A stretch of DNA of 8,458 nt from Selaginella moellendorffii (GCF_000143415.4 NW_003314633.1:1-8458), one strand, 5' to 3'. Counted from the stretch's first letter, positions 806 to 8,401 are shown. A program made the numbers and translations. The notes: generated from the sequence alone by a model not told the origin.

Positions 806-2595
806 TTAAGATGAGACATATATGCATTTTGTAACTCTGGTGCCAAACAGAGCTCCAGCACAGTTTTGAACAAGTGTGGCCAACGTGCTAGTTGCTCTTT
901 TGGGAGGATAGTAAGCTTCTGACCGGTACTGAGGCGCTATGGCAGGCCCAAACTGTAAGAACTGGTGGAATGTGGACCCATTAAGGAGCAGATCTCCTGT
1001 TGATTGGATTACTGGTGTCAAATCGAAATCAGCTCCTACGCCTTGAAACCATGGCGTGACTTCAGGTCTTCTGGCAGCGATGAAAACATTAGCCTCGCTC
1101 TTGACTTTAGCTCTGGCTCGAGCTCCTATTGCATAGTATCCCCAATTGGTGTACAAGTTGTTAATAACGTGGCAGTAGCCCCATCTAAAAACCATGCCCA
1201 CAAATTAATGTCAAGATTAGAAAAAATTGCTAAATGAAACCTGCAGTGAGGCATCCGTTGCATGGAATCCTTAAACCAGTTCCTGTAGACGGTGACCCTC
1301 ATTTTCTGATCTTGAATATCCGCATCGGAGGCTCCCAGAAGCATATTGAAGTTAGGATTAGTCAAAAAACAATTAGAGATGGTTACGTCGGTGGAACCTT
1401 GGACAACAGAAACCAGGCCCAGCTTTGCATTGAATGACGTGAGGTGATCCACCCAGACATTGCTGGTGCCAGCGAAAATGTGCACCGTATCCGTCTCACC
1501 AACTGTGTTGATTTGAAAATTGTGAAGAATGACGTTTTTGACTCCAGCAAGAACAATGGACCGACCATTGATAGTAATATTCACCCCTCTCCCGTCAATA
1601 GTTGTTGAGCTTCGTATCCATAGCATTTCAGTAAGGGTGATAATCATGGATTTTGCAAAGGTTATCCAGACTCCACCCTTGTCATCCCCTCCGAGACTCA
1701 CTCCATATCTTAAGGTTCCTTTGGAAGGGGTCACTGCATTGTCATCAGCATTGGTGACAATGTATGACTGACCTTGAGCCCCACCAGTGGTTCCTGAGGC
1801 GAATCCAACAACACAGGTAGGCAAAAGCTTACCTTTGCCACAGTTGCTGAATTGGCAGGTGGTACCGTCAACTGGTAAGCAAGATTTTCCAGGAGCAGCA
1901 GCACCACTACCTGAAAGATTACCCATGACCCATGAACAATTTTCCATGGATTTCACTCACCCGCCGTTTCAGGTTGGAAAACTACTTCGTCCGATTGTCG
2001 CCCAGTAAGGAACTGTAGCGGTTCTTCAGCCTCTTCAATATGAGTCAGTGCTTGCTTGGTTAAAAACAAAACTGCCTTCCCAGTATGATCCTATGGAGGA
2101 ATGAAATCTTTTAGACATAAAACACATGCTTCTATAATCCAATTGTGGAAATGAACACACTTGGGGTGCAGCTTCAAGAGCCGCATTGCAATCTTCAACG
2201 TTCTTTTTCGCATTTCCCAGATGTGTTCTCGAGCTCTCGTACTCATCTTCAAGAACATAAGTTTCAACTAGGGAGAGTGAAGAGATAGCGGCATTTATTT
2301 GCTTTTTGCACTTCCCAACGCTTGTAGGTGCCGATTCAGCACGCTGGAGATATAGTTCACCTTTCTCAATGCTGCCAATTACTTCTTGTTCTGACGTTTC
2401 ATTGATTGCTTGTTCATCCTTTTTCTGCTGTGAATGGCTGCCATCCAGCGGAGCTGATTCTTGTCCCAATGGCTGTGGAAAATCCAATTCAAGGGGCTCC
2501 TGAATCGAGCAGTGGAGTTGCTGAGAGATTATCAACACTAAAACAAAGCATAGAGCTTGCTTTCGCGTAGACATTTTTCCTATCGATTCTCTCAT
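806..2595 (-). CDS. Secreted pectate lyase family (PL1) protein with a long N-terminal extension including a PMEI-like helical segment; exons 2595-2161, 2090-1961, 1910-1241, 1184-806 (537 aa, or 530 aa from the ATG at 2574)
   Basis: Three GT-AG introns (70, 50, 56 bp) join the ORF pieces in frame (1614 nt). PL1 motifs: VGFASGTTGG, GTLRYGV, TTIDGRG, VWVDH, GSTDVTISN, MLLGASD, and QRMPHCR|WGYCHVINN (RxPxxR completed across intron 3), then WGYYAIG. Hydrophobic signal-like segment ALCFVLVLIIS follows MSTRKQ. Confidence 0.92.
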
Positions 2596-2744: not shown

Positions 2745-4267
2745 ATGGACAAAACGAGGCGCGATGAGCAGGATGCCTGGGAGCGCACTGAAGGAATTGA
2801 GCACAAACTCACCAAAATTGGTATTTTCTAGAGTCTCTGAAAAGGCAATAAAGAATTTCCCAATGTCTGCAGGAGTTGGTGGCAAGGCCTACTACGATGC
2901 TTCACAAATCAAAATTAAGAGGAACAAGGTACTTATAGCGGCTGCAAAGCTCGAGAACAAGCAGCTTCGTGCAACTCTTAATTCGTTGCTAGAACAAGAA
3001 AGATGTGCTTTGGGTCGCTCCGACTTGAGAAGACTCGGGGATCGTGTGGCAGCTCTTCGTAAGTGTTATGACGAGCAGAGACACAGGTCCATTGTTACGG
3101 AGGTTATGGTGAGCAATCTGCTGTGTGCACGATCGTGTTTTAAACTGTGACTGACAGCTGGAAAGTCAAACAACGAACACAAAATCTGCACAAGTGGACT
3201 GCGAACAGGCATTGGACAACAACACAGCTCCACTTGTCAAGCTACGAGCTCTGGAAGAAACACTTGAGCAAGCGGTACTAGGTCTTAAAGAAGCTCGTGA
3301 ACTAAAGAGCAGCTACGAAGCAACTTTAAAGCCCATATGCGATGAGAGAGCTATCTACAACAGCCAGGTCTGCCTGTCCAATCGCTAATTTAGTTAACTG
3401 TCAGTACGCTGTAGATGGACACCCTGGGTAGAACATCAAGGCGTAGAGAAGAGGAGTACGAGCAAATGACACTTATGTATTATGACGCCTTGCGCGCGAG
3501 AGAGGAATCAAGATCGGCACTGGAAGAAGTAGGTAAGGTTTTTATTTACATAAACGTGCCGTGATTCTTTTGCAGTGTGCATCTGGATTCCGTAGAATTT
3601 AAATTTATGTGGTGCATTTGCAGATGATGCGAGCGCAGTTTCCAATTGGGGTTAGATATCATAATTTGTTCAGTGAGGTATATTTGCTACCAGGTGCATT
3701 TATCCCGCTGACCCTTGCAGCATGGTACAGCCTGATCTTCCTAGGAACATCGCTACACTTGGTCAAATTCACGAGGTGTCCCCGCATATATTATCAGCTT
3801 TGAGCTTTCCAACAATGAAGGAATTATTTCACTATGTAGTCACCTTGCGGAGAAACAGCGATTACCTAGACCACCTTACAAGTGAGCTAAAAGAGCTTGT
3901 TAATCAACTGAAAAGTGGAACTCTGTCTGCTAAGGTGAGAAAATCATGTGCTTCTCATTAATCCTCAACTCTCCTATGTAGAGTTTACAAGAGAGAATTC
4001 AGAAAATGAAATGGAAAATCGCTGGGCAAATTGGACCCGAGCCTAGTGCAACTAGCCAGCGAAGAAAGAAAGGGGCTCTTGGTGATACCTTAAAGAAAAT
4101 GGTCGAAGGAACAAAGCGACTGATGAATAAAATTCACAAGTTTGGGACGCGACAGCGAGCTTCCTCTTTAATCTCCGTTATTCGAGGAACTAAAAGGCTC
4201 GTGGATAAGATTCACGAGGGGGAGATGTACAATGTATGTAAAGTCTTGGTTGTCACAGGTTGCTCAC

Positions 4268-4322
<55 letters not shown>

Positions 4323-4533: not shown

Positions 4534-4637
4534 AAATAATGTTAACTTTAATTCCATTTCACTTTGTCACACACGTAAGCTTCAGAACGGTTCTGATTTA
4601 CCCTAAAAGCTTGTCACTCTTGCAACAAAATCTATTT

Positions 4638-7600
4638 ATGGCGGGGAATGAGTGGATTAATGGCTATTTGGAAGCAATATTGGACACAGGAACTGCTGGA
4701 ACAATTGACGATCAGCAGCAGCGTCTATTAGAAAGTAGTCCTGCTCGAAGAATTGTTGCTGTGAATGCTACTAAATATTTCATCCAGGAGGTTGTCTCGG
4801 GCTTCGATGAGAGCGACATTCATCAGACGTGGATGAAGGTACCAAAACTGAAGAATAACGGAAAAGAAGTAACTCTTCTCTTTATTACAGGCAACTGCTT
4901 GTAGGAACTCAAAAGAGAGGAGTGCACGGCTTGAGAATTTATGTTGGAGGATATGGCATATAAGCCGCAAGAGAAAACAGGTTTGGTGCAAATGTTTTAA
5001 CGAAGCATCAGAAGTTCTTCTCAGATTGAGTGGGCAAATACACAAAGAGTTGCAGGCCGTCACTTTGAGCATGAGCAAGGGCGAAAAGATGCTGCGGATG
5101 ATTTGTGCGAGGATTATCCAGAGGCAGACCTACATTCAGATATAGCTGGACTTAGGCTCTCAAGAAATAGCTCCGAGACAGATGTGCGGAAAAGTTTCAA
5201 CGAAGGACAGCACAAAGACAAGTGTCTGTATATTGTCTTGATCAGGTACGCCATGTGGATCTGAATTTTACTTACGTTGGTTTAGCTTACATGGACTTGT
5301 TCGTGGGGAGAACATGGAACTTGGGCGTGACTCGGATACAGGAGGTCAGGTACTGACTTCCAAGTTGAGTTCGTTTCTTTAAAAGACGCCAGCTATAGGT
5401 CAAGTATGTTGTGGAGTTTGCAAGAGCTTTAGCTATGATGCCCGAAGTTTACCGCGTGGATTTGTTAACTCGTCAAATTTTGGCACCAGATGTTGACCGT
5501 AGCTACGGTGAGCCCACAGAAACGTTAGCCCCAGGTTCTTATGACTGCTGTGGAGACGAAGTAGGAGAGAGTAGTGGTGCCTACATTGTGCGCATTCCCT
5601 GTGGTCCGAGGGATCAATATCTACGGAAGGAATTATTATGGCCATATATTCAAGAATTTGTAGATGGGTCGCTAACGCACATTGTGAACATGGCTAAAGC
5701 TTTAGGAGAACAGATAACTGGTGGGGACTCGGTATGGCCTTATGTGATTCATGGACATTATGCCGACGCAGGGGATATTGCTGCTCTGATTTCAGGCGCA
5801 TTAAACGTACCAATGGTCTTAACAGGTCATTCTCTGGGCCGCAACAAACTTGAACAACTTTTGAAGCAAGGACGGCAGTCTAAGACAGATATCAACACAA
5901 GCTACAAAATTATGCGGAGAATAGAAGCTGAAGAGTTTTCCTTAGACACTGCGGAACTCGTCATAACTAGTACAAGACAAGAAATTGAAGAACAGTGGGG
6001 ATTATACGACGGTTTTGATCTGAAGCTTGAAAAAGTTTTGAGGGCTAGAATAAAAAGAGGCGTCAGCTGTCATGGCCGACACATGCCTCGCATGGCAGTA
6101 AGTTGATTTTCTTTAAGCTACTTTTCCAAGAATGAAGTGCAGGTTATTGCACCNNNNNNNNNNNNNNNNNNNNNNNNNNNNNNNNNNNNNNNNNNNNNNN
6201 NNNNNNNNNNNNNNNNNNNNNNNNNNNNNNNNNNNNNNNNNNNNNNNNNNNNNAAGAAGCAGTTGATATACTAGAAGGTGAAATAGAAGGAGAAGGCATC
6301 CCTGTGGCGCCTCCATCTCCTAAACCTGAACCACCTATTTGGAGTGAGGTTTGTAAAGAAAATGGCTTTTCTGGTTCTTCACTCAGCTCAAACCAGGTTA
6401 TGAAGTTTTTTACCAACCCCCATAAGCCAATGATTCTGGCCCTTGCTCGACCTGATCCAAAAAAGAACCTAGCAACGCTTGTAAAAGCCTTTGGAGAAAG
6501 CAAGCCGCTACGGGAATTGGCAAATATGGTAGTGGTAACTTTAGACGGACAATGTCTTTTTACATGGTCAATTATGTACAGACATTAATAATGGGGAACA
6601 GAGATGACATCGATACAATGCCAGGCACAAGCTCCAATATACTCACGAGTGTCCTTAAACTTATAGACAAGTACGATCTTTATGGTCAAGTTGCATACCC
6701 AAAACATCACAAGCAAAATGAAGTTCCAGACATTTATCGGCTAGCTGCCAAAACTAAGGTATTACTCCTTTTAAAAAGAAAAGAATTAGTGAACCTTATG
6801 AAAGCAGGGCGTATTTATCAACCCCGCACTGGTGGAGCCCTTTGGTTTGACCCTTATCGAGGTTTGTTGTTAGTATTGCCTGTTTTCTGGTTTCATAAAC
6901 CGTGTGCACAGGCAGCTGCACATGGTTTACCTATGGTTGCTACAATGAATGGAGGTCCAGTAGATATTCAAAAGGTGAGTCAGTATTTTTCATTAAATTT
7001 ATTAATGAGTTTTGTCTTCTATTAAAGACTCTGAGTAATGGAGTTCTTGTGGATCCACACGACGAGCAAGCCATCGCAACTGCATTGATCAAACTTGTTG
7101 CCGATCGTTGGTTGTGGGGAGAATGCCGTCGTAACGGCCTAAAAAATATTCACATGTATTCATGGCCTGAACATTGCAAAACATATCTATCAAAGATATC
7201 TCTTTGCAAAAGGAAACAGCCGCTATGGCAAAACAATTTTTCTAATCATAGTACTGAGGACAATTCCCAGGAAGATTCTTTAAAAGATGTGGAAGACATA
7301 TCTTTACAGCTATCTGACGATGGAGAAGTACCCGAGAACGTTGAGAAGGGCAAGCAAATATATGACAAACAACTAAGTTTAGTGGCTACGGAACAGAAAC
7401 TTATTGGGCTGGAGAAGTTGCAAAATTGTAAGTTCCCATTCTTAAGGAGAAGAAAAAAAGTATGTGTTCTAGCAATAGACAGCTACGACAGCAATAAAGC
7501 TTCCAAGAACATGCTGGCTGCAGTTCGTGAGATATTCACAGCTTGTAAGATGGGGTTAACGGGCTTTATTCTTTCTACAGCCATGACAGCTTCAGAGACC

Positions 7601-8401
7601 CTATCAGCGCTTGCAGAAGATGGAATACCCGTGACAGATTTTGATGCCTTGGTTTGTAACAGTGGTGCTTCGCTGTACTATCCTTCAATGAGCTTCAACA
7701 GTCAGGTGCACCTGGTGCCAGATTATGACTACGATCATCACATTGATTATCACTGGAGTAGCGACGGGATAAGGAAGGCAATGGGCAGGCTTACTGTCTC
7801 AGAGGCTGGAGACCTGCCAATAATCATTGAGGAGGAACTGCGTTCTAGCACGCACTGCGTTGCTTATCGGGTCAATACCGCAAATGTAAGTAGTTAACAT
7901 TGTCTTTAACTTGTCTTGCATTGTCTGTTAGCTATTTATCTCTGAATTAGATGGTGAAAGTGGATGAGTACCGTCGCCTCTTGAGAATGCGTGGCTTAAG
8001 GTGTCATATTATCTACTGCCTGAATACCACAAAGCTTCACATAGTTCCAGTGCTGGCCTCTCGTTCCCAGGCCATAAGGTATCTGAAACATGTATAGAGA
8101 GTATTTCATTTTCTTGCATAATGTCAGGTACTTGTTTGTGAGATGGGGAATGGATATAGGAAACACTGTTGTTTTTGTTGGTGAGACCGGTGATTCGGAT
8201 TACGAGCAGCTGCTATCCGGGATCCATAAGATTATTGTCTTAACAGGCCTTGTTCCTCACAGAGCTGCTGGCAAGGAAGATGTGGTTCGCACGACTGGGA
8301 CTAGAGAAGACGTTGTCCCATCTGAGAGTAATAATAATCTTGTCGCAACTAGTTGTGAAGCTATTGCTGCTGCACTCAGCAAGGTAAGCTTTCAAGTTTA
8401 G
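4638..8401 (+). CDS. SPS: Sucrose-phosphate synthase (GT4 glycosyltransferase plus SPP-like C-terminal domain), about 1030 aa; exons 4638-4838, 4891-4980, 5025-5245, 5286-5349, 5399-6097, 6143-6348 (contains the gap), 6397-6528, 6582-6758, 6808-6861, 6912-6974, 7028-7885, 7951-8078, 8128-8401
   Basis: Diagnostic plant SPS motifs: [152 protein letters not shown]. Twelve GT-AG introns of 40-65 bp are all phase-consistent. Confidence 0.98.
6154..6253. other. Assembly gap (100 N placeholder) within SPS exon 6
   Basis: Exactly 100 N, flanked by VIAP and EAVDILEGE coding sequence. Confidence 0.99.

Follow-up and report, generated by a model that had tools for sequence, protein, structure and literature searches.

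A probable PMEI-like helical bundle fused to a pectate lyase-family domain in Selaginella moellendorffii

The window, by which we mean the whole stretch of 8,458 nucleotides of Selaginella moellendorffii DNA that was analysed, holds a four-exon gene on the minus strand that runs from 2595 to 806 and, according to its translation and a reading of its splice sites, comprises 537 codons once spliced (Table 1). The gene would encode a secreted protein in which a helical domain precedes a PL1 lyase domain. Elsewhere in the window, exons of a sucrose-phosphate synthase gene lie on the plus strand at 4539-8401, and a stretch of N, either masked sequence or a gap, is present at ~6150-6260. The apparent first exons of a tubulin-tyrosine-ligase-like gene (CKYEVMRNVIGKLGWQE...LYWT) lie on the minus strand at 1-560 and give way at the window edge (1-45) to a (CT)n/(CA)n microsatellite; a similar (CT)n run is found near 4300. 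Upstream of the lyase gene, at 2764-3400 on the plus strand, there is a divergent, coiled-coil-looking ORF of 128 aa, which is followed by more ORFs.

Table 1. Position of the features of the lyase gene, counted from the first letter of the window.
Feature	Position	Strand	Remarks
Exon 1	2161..2595	-	145 codons; ATG at 2595, alternative ATG at 2574; signal peptide, acidic low-complexity spacer, helices α1-α3
Predicted signal peptide (MSTRKQALCFVLVLIISQQLHC)	2509..2574	-	Basic n-region, then hydrophobic core; read by eye
Helices α1-α3 (residues ~66-145)	2161..2400	-	Aligned with helices 1-3 of modelled homologues; sub-threshold PF04043 match
Cys96, start of α2	2308..2310	-	Aligns with third conserved PMEI Cys
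Cys136, end of α3	2188..2190	-	Aligns with fourth conserved PMEI Cys
Intron 1	2091..2160	-	70 nt, GT...AG, phase 0; GT donor 2160-2159; within the α3-α4 loop
Exon 2	1961..2090	-	130 nt; helix α4 (GKAVLFLTKQALTHIEEAEE) and first part of the flexible linker
Intron 2	1911..1960	-	50 nt, GTGAGT...CAG, phase 1; frame carries on into exon 3
Exon 3	1241..1910	-	Remaining linker, Cys-rich start and main portion of the PL1 β-helix; includes the codons for NAKLGLVSVVQGST
Intron 3	1185..1240	-	56 nt, GT...AG; splicing gives QRMPHC-R-WGYCHV, matching homologues
Exon 4	806..1184	-	C-terminal PL1 portion and stop codon; PF00544 profile positions 177-211

Each of the three introns is bounded by the canonical GT...AG, and none disturbs the reading frame. 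The peptide read from exons 1 and 2 agrees exactly with the one quoted in the original prediction, which had been made from the DNA alone; exon 2 itself translates as DHTGKAVLFLTKQALTHIEEAEE, followed by the linker. The exon layout recurs in relatives. A Diphasiastrum gene (L001) has a phase-0 intron that falls between helices 3 and 4, at most one residue from the alignment column of intron 1, and a lycophyte genomic contig from the Logan assembly (L002) has all four exons in matching order, with intron 1 at the corresponding position. Taken exon by exon, identity to this contig is 47.6% over 82 aa for exon 1, 61% over 18 aa for the α4 exon, and 72% and 65% for the exons that follow. Given the canonical sites and the same exon layout in relatives, the predicted splice model of the fusion has good, indirect support. 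Searches from the window itself were made with single exons, one at a time, and full-length comparisons were made via homologous proteins.

Exons 3 and 4 together make the PL1 domain (PF00544, E 2.7e-15 and 4e-4, respectively). Membership of PL1 is clear: PF00544 scores 57 bits against a cut-off of 24, and VWVDH and RMPHCR provide the WxDH and RxPxxR motifs. The domain departs from ordinary plant pectate lyases at the calcium site, where LGLVSV in exon 3 replaces the calcium-binding DGLVDA. Compared with a canonical Solanum pectate lyase, exon 3 is 44% identical, has both Asp replaced and lacks a loop of ~20 residues that sits before the xDxxxIF motif. A word search with the exon-3 ORF recovered a distinct clade with 50-73% identity, whereas canonical plant pectate lyases reached 43% at most. 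Both Asp are lost in all 35 clade members with a readable motif and are kept in 71 canonical lyases. Since two calcium ligands and the loop have been lost, the lyase domain of the window may be calcium-independent or even non-catalytic. Fungal pectin lyases likewise lack these calcium ligands, and they prefer esterified pectin.

The helical domain ahead of the lyase spans ~115 residues and is joined to PL1 by a linker of ~30-50 residues that varies among homologues; in the window the linker reads EEPLQFLTGRQSDEVVFQPETAGSGAAAPGKSC. An acidic spacer of ~40 residues, with no Cys, separates the signal peptide from helix 1. The original prediction had placed a PMEI-like domain at 1961-2340. A helical domain does lie there, but that start is too late, helix 1 (residues ~66-88) beginning at ~2400. 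Translation bore out the two Cys, 40 codons apart, that had been read from the DNA (Cys96 and Cys136). Cys96 is present in 8 of the 8 non-angiosperm members of alignment A2, Cys136 is likewise conserved among the non-angiosperm members, and both Cys are kept, along with the helical pattern, in homologues from Diphasiastrum, Adiantum and Ginkgo; the recurrence of both in these sequences is more than chance. The α4 of exon 2 aligns with that of P0004, P0125 and P0128 and of the angiosperm members. The angiosperm rows of A2 (P0020, P0030, P0123 and P0005) differ in their Cys: that of α2 is lost, and others lie ahead of helix 1 and where helix 4 ends; some rows also have DFC where helix 4 begins. 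Because the α2 Cys is lost and Cys are found elsewhere instead, the alignment suggests that the disulfide staple has moved to other helix pairs in the angiosperm bundles.

Two hallmarks of PMEIs and of their fusions to pectin methylesterases are missing from the window, as had been anticipated for the first Cys pair and the processing site. The N-terminal hairpin and the first PMEI disulfide pair are absent, and only the Cys-free acidic spacer precedes helix 1. No basic processing motif of the RRLL/RKLL kind occurs in the window linker, and the homologue linkers have no basic motif in common. The translated sequence contains only GKLL, which was considered as a PME-style processing site and rejected: it sits within the conserved Cys-rich start of the lyase and is thus not a linker motif.

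In a survey of relatives, the architecture predicted from the window was found again in a clubmoss (Diphasiastrum; P0001, P0004, P0125 and P0132), a fern (Adiantum; P0024 and P0026) and Ginkgo (P0128) and, among the angiosperms, in Acorus (P0020) and Ranunculales (Coptis P0123 and Papaver P0030, with a partial copy in Macleaya, P0005). Full-length Coptis, Diphasiastrum and Ginkgo proteins of 500-539 residues are among the profile matches. By HMM scan and motif count, all 14 N-domain proteins with a readable motif have LGLVSV-type residues and lack the two Asp, and none of the 71 canonical lyases carries the N-domain. In the set examined, the bundle is confined to one lyase clade, which is without the two calcium-binding Asp. 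Members of this clade without the N-domain occur in Nymphaea, in Cupressaceae/Taxaceae and as one S. moellendorffii paralogue, which indicates that the domain is ancient and has been lost repeatedly. From the sequences compared, the fusion would be no younger than the common ancestor that lycophytes share with seed plants. Sequence searches found the calcium-site-less clade in lycophytes, ferns, gymnosperms and early-branching angiosperms and did not find it in core eudicots or grasses. Precomputed Pfam annotation gives its members PF00544 alone. [quoted passage not shown]

A second S. moellendorffii protein, P0002 ('pectate lyase 1 isoform X2', 413 aa), belongs to the same calcium-site-less clade and is 69% identical in the lyase part. 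Its N-terminus is different, consisting of ~80 residues with Cys among them and without a four-helix bundle.

The relationship of the N-domain to PMEIs is harder to establish from sequence. When exon 1 was scanned against Pfam, PF04043 was indeed the only Pfam match, as the original prediction would have it, but at 14.7 bits (E 0.035) it lies below the gathering threshold of 29; the match pairs residues 88-141 with profile positions 71-127 of 156. In P0121, the closest relative, PF04043 is again the sole Pfam match (E 0.08, 13.5 bits). Ten other N-domain members gave no match to PF04043 and only scattered noise, for example, perilipin and MscS_porin. When exon 1 and the profiles A1 and A2 were searched against PDB sequences, PMEI was not found and the matches were at chance level only. 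A word search with exon 1 alone, under a length filter that leaves out full-length relatives, gave no match. Pec_lyase_N (PF04431) was considered as the identity of the N-domain and was rejected, as there was no Pfam match to it.

Profile A1, built from the N-domains of the relatives, was searched against 1.84 billion representative proteins and gave only ten matches at E 1e-3 or better, three of which lie outside the N-domain family. The first is a legume protein from Sphenostylis with two true PMEI domains (PF04043 3e-38), which matches the profile at E 1.2e-4; that value is the sum of two domain matches of 17-19 bits each, and a single PMEI domain would not be significant alone in the profile search. 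The second, at E 2.4e-7 to the profile, is a repeat protein from Stygiella, for which the best Pfam match is PMEI (2e-5, below the cut-off). The third is a low-complexity repeat protein, which we have taken for noise. The Stygiella protein (P0124, from a Stygiella incarcerata transcript, 880 aa) is a secreted jakobid protein made up of ~six helical repeats rich in Cys. It could represent a repeat protein of PMEI-like type from outside the plants, or else a contaminant. A look-up of encoding contigs gave no record for P0124 or for Ginkgo P0128.

Where the domain can be aligned with PMEIs, its Cys fall in register. In the HMM alignments, both Cys of the N-domain coincide with the CxxQY and SxCxxxF motifs of PMEI domains. 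A comparison of the 13-row A2 with five legume PMEI domains by hhalign gave a probability of 10.6% and an E of 0.0029, again with the Cys in register, against a shallow template alignment; the template is shallow because a word search for PMEI sequences gave only three close legume relatives. In both kinds of alignment, the pair matches that between α2 and α3 of PMEIs, in agreement with the earlier suggestion that it represents their second-disulfide core. As a control, the five PMEI domains were compared with shuffled versions of themselves: the domains scored 8-18 bits and the best shuffles 5-9 bits, and the real score was reached by 0 of 400 shuffles in four PMEI domains and by 1 of 400 in the fifth. 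When the Ginkgo domain was used in a language-model feature search, PMEI clusters alone came first, with a score of 0.76 that we treat as a lead only.

Structural models were made with AlphaFold2 for homologues that are 19-33% identical to the domain of the window, namely, P0004:1-115 (alignment A1) and Ginkgo P0128:55-190 (A4). Both were predicted to form four long helices (pLDDT 86.4 and pTM 0.77 for P0004; pLDDT 90.5 and pTM 0.83 for Ginkgo), and both are up-down four-helix bundles, the topology of PMEI and CIF. The models were compared with 350,542 PDB chains by Foldseek and with 48,161 representative chains by VIA-align. The best Foldseek match of the P0004 model was Arabidopsis PMEI 1x8z_A (E 5e-3, TM 0.82, rmsd 2.2), with PMEI mutants, Nt-CIF and kiwi PMEI lower in the list. 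For the Ginkgo model, 1x8z_A, 1x90_A and kiwi PMEI 1xg2_B took the first three ranks and CIF the seventh. As proposed at the outset, then, structure prediction followed by Foldseek puts PMEI first for two homologue models, at E values for the PMEI matches of 0.005-0.02 and never below 1e-3. VIA-align returned, for the two models, 15.4 (2) and 15.2 (2) with 1x8z_A (AtPMEI1), 14.1 (5) and 14.1 (3) with 1xg2_B (kiwi PMEI), and 13.0 (9) and 13.4 (6) with 1rj1_A (Nt-CIF). Identity to working PMEIs within the structural alignments is 9-18%. The alignment of the P0004 model to 1x8z_A begins at residue 29 of the latter, past the hairpin, so that the match is to the bundle and not to the hairpin. TTYH3, single-chain ROP and designed bundles equal PMEI on Z and TM; the topology is common, and topology alone gives helical bundles such values. 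A shape search of the ESM Atlas found generic helical matches only. Taken together with the conserved Cys, the models give good support to a four-helix fold with a predicted Cys96-Cys136 disulfide.

Of the claim that a PMEI-like bundle is attached to a PL1 lyase, the bundle, its topology and the register of its Cys have stood, while every score to PMEI falls below the usual level of significance. Strictly, the domain is not a member of PF04043, either by the score cut-off or by possession of the hairpin with its disulfide. We nonetheless believe that homology of the bundle to the PMEI superfamily is probable, because several methods, weak and in part independent of one another, agree on PMEI over the many other four-helix families, the Cys are in register and the partner is a pectin enzyme.

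The most serious alternative is convergence: a generic four-helix bundle, stapled by a disulfide, would have come to look like PMEI, would serve, for example, in spacing, oligomerisation or binding to the wall, and would carry no information on inhibition. Bundles of four helices in the up-down arrangement occur very widely, as the ties of PMEI with TTYH3, single-chain ROP and designed bundles illustrate, and convergence would sit comfortably with the low hhalign probability of 10.6% to the five legume PMEI domains, with a Pfam match that is sub-threshold here and silent in most members, with PDB sequence-profile searches that lack PMEI and with the generic shape matches in the ESM Atlas. However, it would have to account for four different methods ranking PMEI above every other bundle family, for a Cys pair that lines up with Cys 3 and 4 of PMEI at equal spacing, and for a partner enzyme that acts on pectin, like the partner of PMEI-like PRO domains. 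We therefore regard convergence as unlikely, though as an explanation that deserves real weight.

To our knowledge, plants pair PMEI-like bundles with one enzyme only, pectin methylesterase. A review of the PMEI superfamily covers free PMEIs and PMEI-PME fusions only (PMC8990755), and full-text searches of the literature brought up no paper that describes a lyase bearing a PMEI-like domain. The nearest counterpart is the PRO region of group-2 (type I) PMEs (PF04043 + PF01095), which shares with the protein described here an N-terminal bundle, a linker and a secreted right-handed β-helix enzyme of homogalacturonan. In contrast to that PRO region, whose partner is a CE8 esterase, the bundle here is attached to a PL1 lyase, has no RRLL/RKLL-type motif, no hairpin and no first disulfide, and scores below the PF04043 cut-off. 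The free PMEI and CIF proteins (AtPMEI1 1x8z, kiwi 1xg2_B and Nt-CIF 1rj1) are the best structural matches of the modelled homologues and are similar in having an up-down bundle of ~115 residues in which a disulfide joins helix 2 to helix 3, its Cys ~40 residues apart. Unlike the domain here, they stand alone, are ~150 residues long and bear a hairpin extension with a second disulfide, and identity to them is 9-18%. Finally, canonical PLL proteins (PF04431 + PF00544) have the same PL1 β-helix, the WxDH and RxPxxR motifs and a signal peptide, whereas the clade described here has LGLVSV in place of DGLxDA, has lost the ~20-residue loop and carries the bundle instead of PF04431.

Based on these observations, we propose the following model. 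The gene would encode a secreted two-module protein of 537 residues, composed of a signal peptide, an acidic spacer, the bundle, a linker and a PL1 β-helix. One disulfide, from Cys96 at the start of helix 2 to Cys136 at the end of helix 3, would pin the bundle. From a PMEI-type ancestor the protein would have retained the bundle and its internal disulfide and lost the N-terminal hairpin with the disulfide that belongs to it. The tethered bundle may cover the substrate cleft of its own β-helix, or may aid folding and transit, and could be released by pH or by cleavage of the linker. We put forward a cis-regulatory role of the bundle on its own lyase tentatively, as something that may well prove not to hold, by analogy with the group-2 pectin methylesterases, because the PMEI-like PRO region of these enzymes is an intramolecular inhibitor (PMC8990755). 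In the complex of kiwi PMEI with PME, the cleft of the right-handed β-helix esterase is covered by the bundle rather than by the hairpin (PMC8990755). Taken as a whole, the reading we favour, with some confidence, is that of a divergent PMEI-superfamily bundle without the hairpin, fused to a lyase and perhaps acting in cis.

The bundle might instead work in trans, inhibiting pectin methylesterases and so keeping pectin esterified beside a calcium-independent, pectin-lyase-like enzyme; this is the coupling of methylesterification control to chain cleavage that the original prediction raised as a possibility, next to an auto-inhibitory pro-domain. The PMEI-like predicted fold and the Cys pair are in keeping with this, as is the lack of the two calcium ligands in the lyase, which parallels fungal pectin lyases that prefer esterified pectin. 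Contact of the bundle, rather than the hairpin, with the esterase in the kiwi complex (PMC8990755) points the same way. Against this, identity to working PMEIs is very low (9-18% in structural alignments), and the N-domain has been lost in Nymphaea, in conifers and in one Selaginella paralogue, so that the lyase can do without it. We consider inhibition in trans improbable. A bolder combination is that the clade is a strict pectin lyase, calcium-independent and with a preference for methyl-esterified homogalacturonan, with a tethered PMEI-type inhibitor that works on its own cleft or on nearby methylesterases. This we judge to be quite a long shot, if a slightly better one than inhibition in trans. 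If it is true and the bundle lids its own cleft, this would be the first protein inhibitor of a PL1-fold lyase; if it is true and the bundle blocks nearby methylesterases, esterified substrate would be preserved. Lastly, that the fusion is a gene-model artefact, with exons 1 and 2 forming a separate small gene or remaining unspliced to the lyase exons, is very hard to maintain: the differing N-terminus of the S. moellendorffii paralogue P0002 would fit it, but all three introns have canonical, frame-keeping GT...AG ends, the lyase without exons 1 and 2 would have no start codon and no signal peptide, the same fusion appears in independent annotations of Diphasiastrum, Ginkgo, Coptis, Acorus and Papaver, a second lycophyte contig (L002) carries the four exons in identical order, and the position and phase of the intron are common to relatives.

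A PMEI-like bundle on a lyase is an architecture not previously described in the full-text literature that we found, and the design of a tethered PMEI-like bundle is already known from PMEs. A second, ancient pairing of bundle and enzyme, this time with a lyase fold, would show that the tethered-inhibitor design has been used more than once in pectin remodelling. Furthermore, the analysis marks out a secreted, calcium-site-less, lyase-like clade to which standard annotation gives the name 'pectate lyase' only. With this clade, one could test concretely whether calcium-independent pectin lyases exist in plants and how such enzymes would be restrained.
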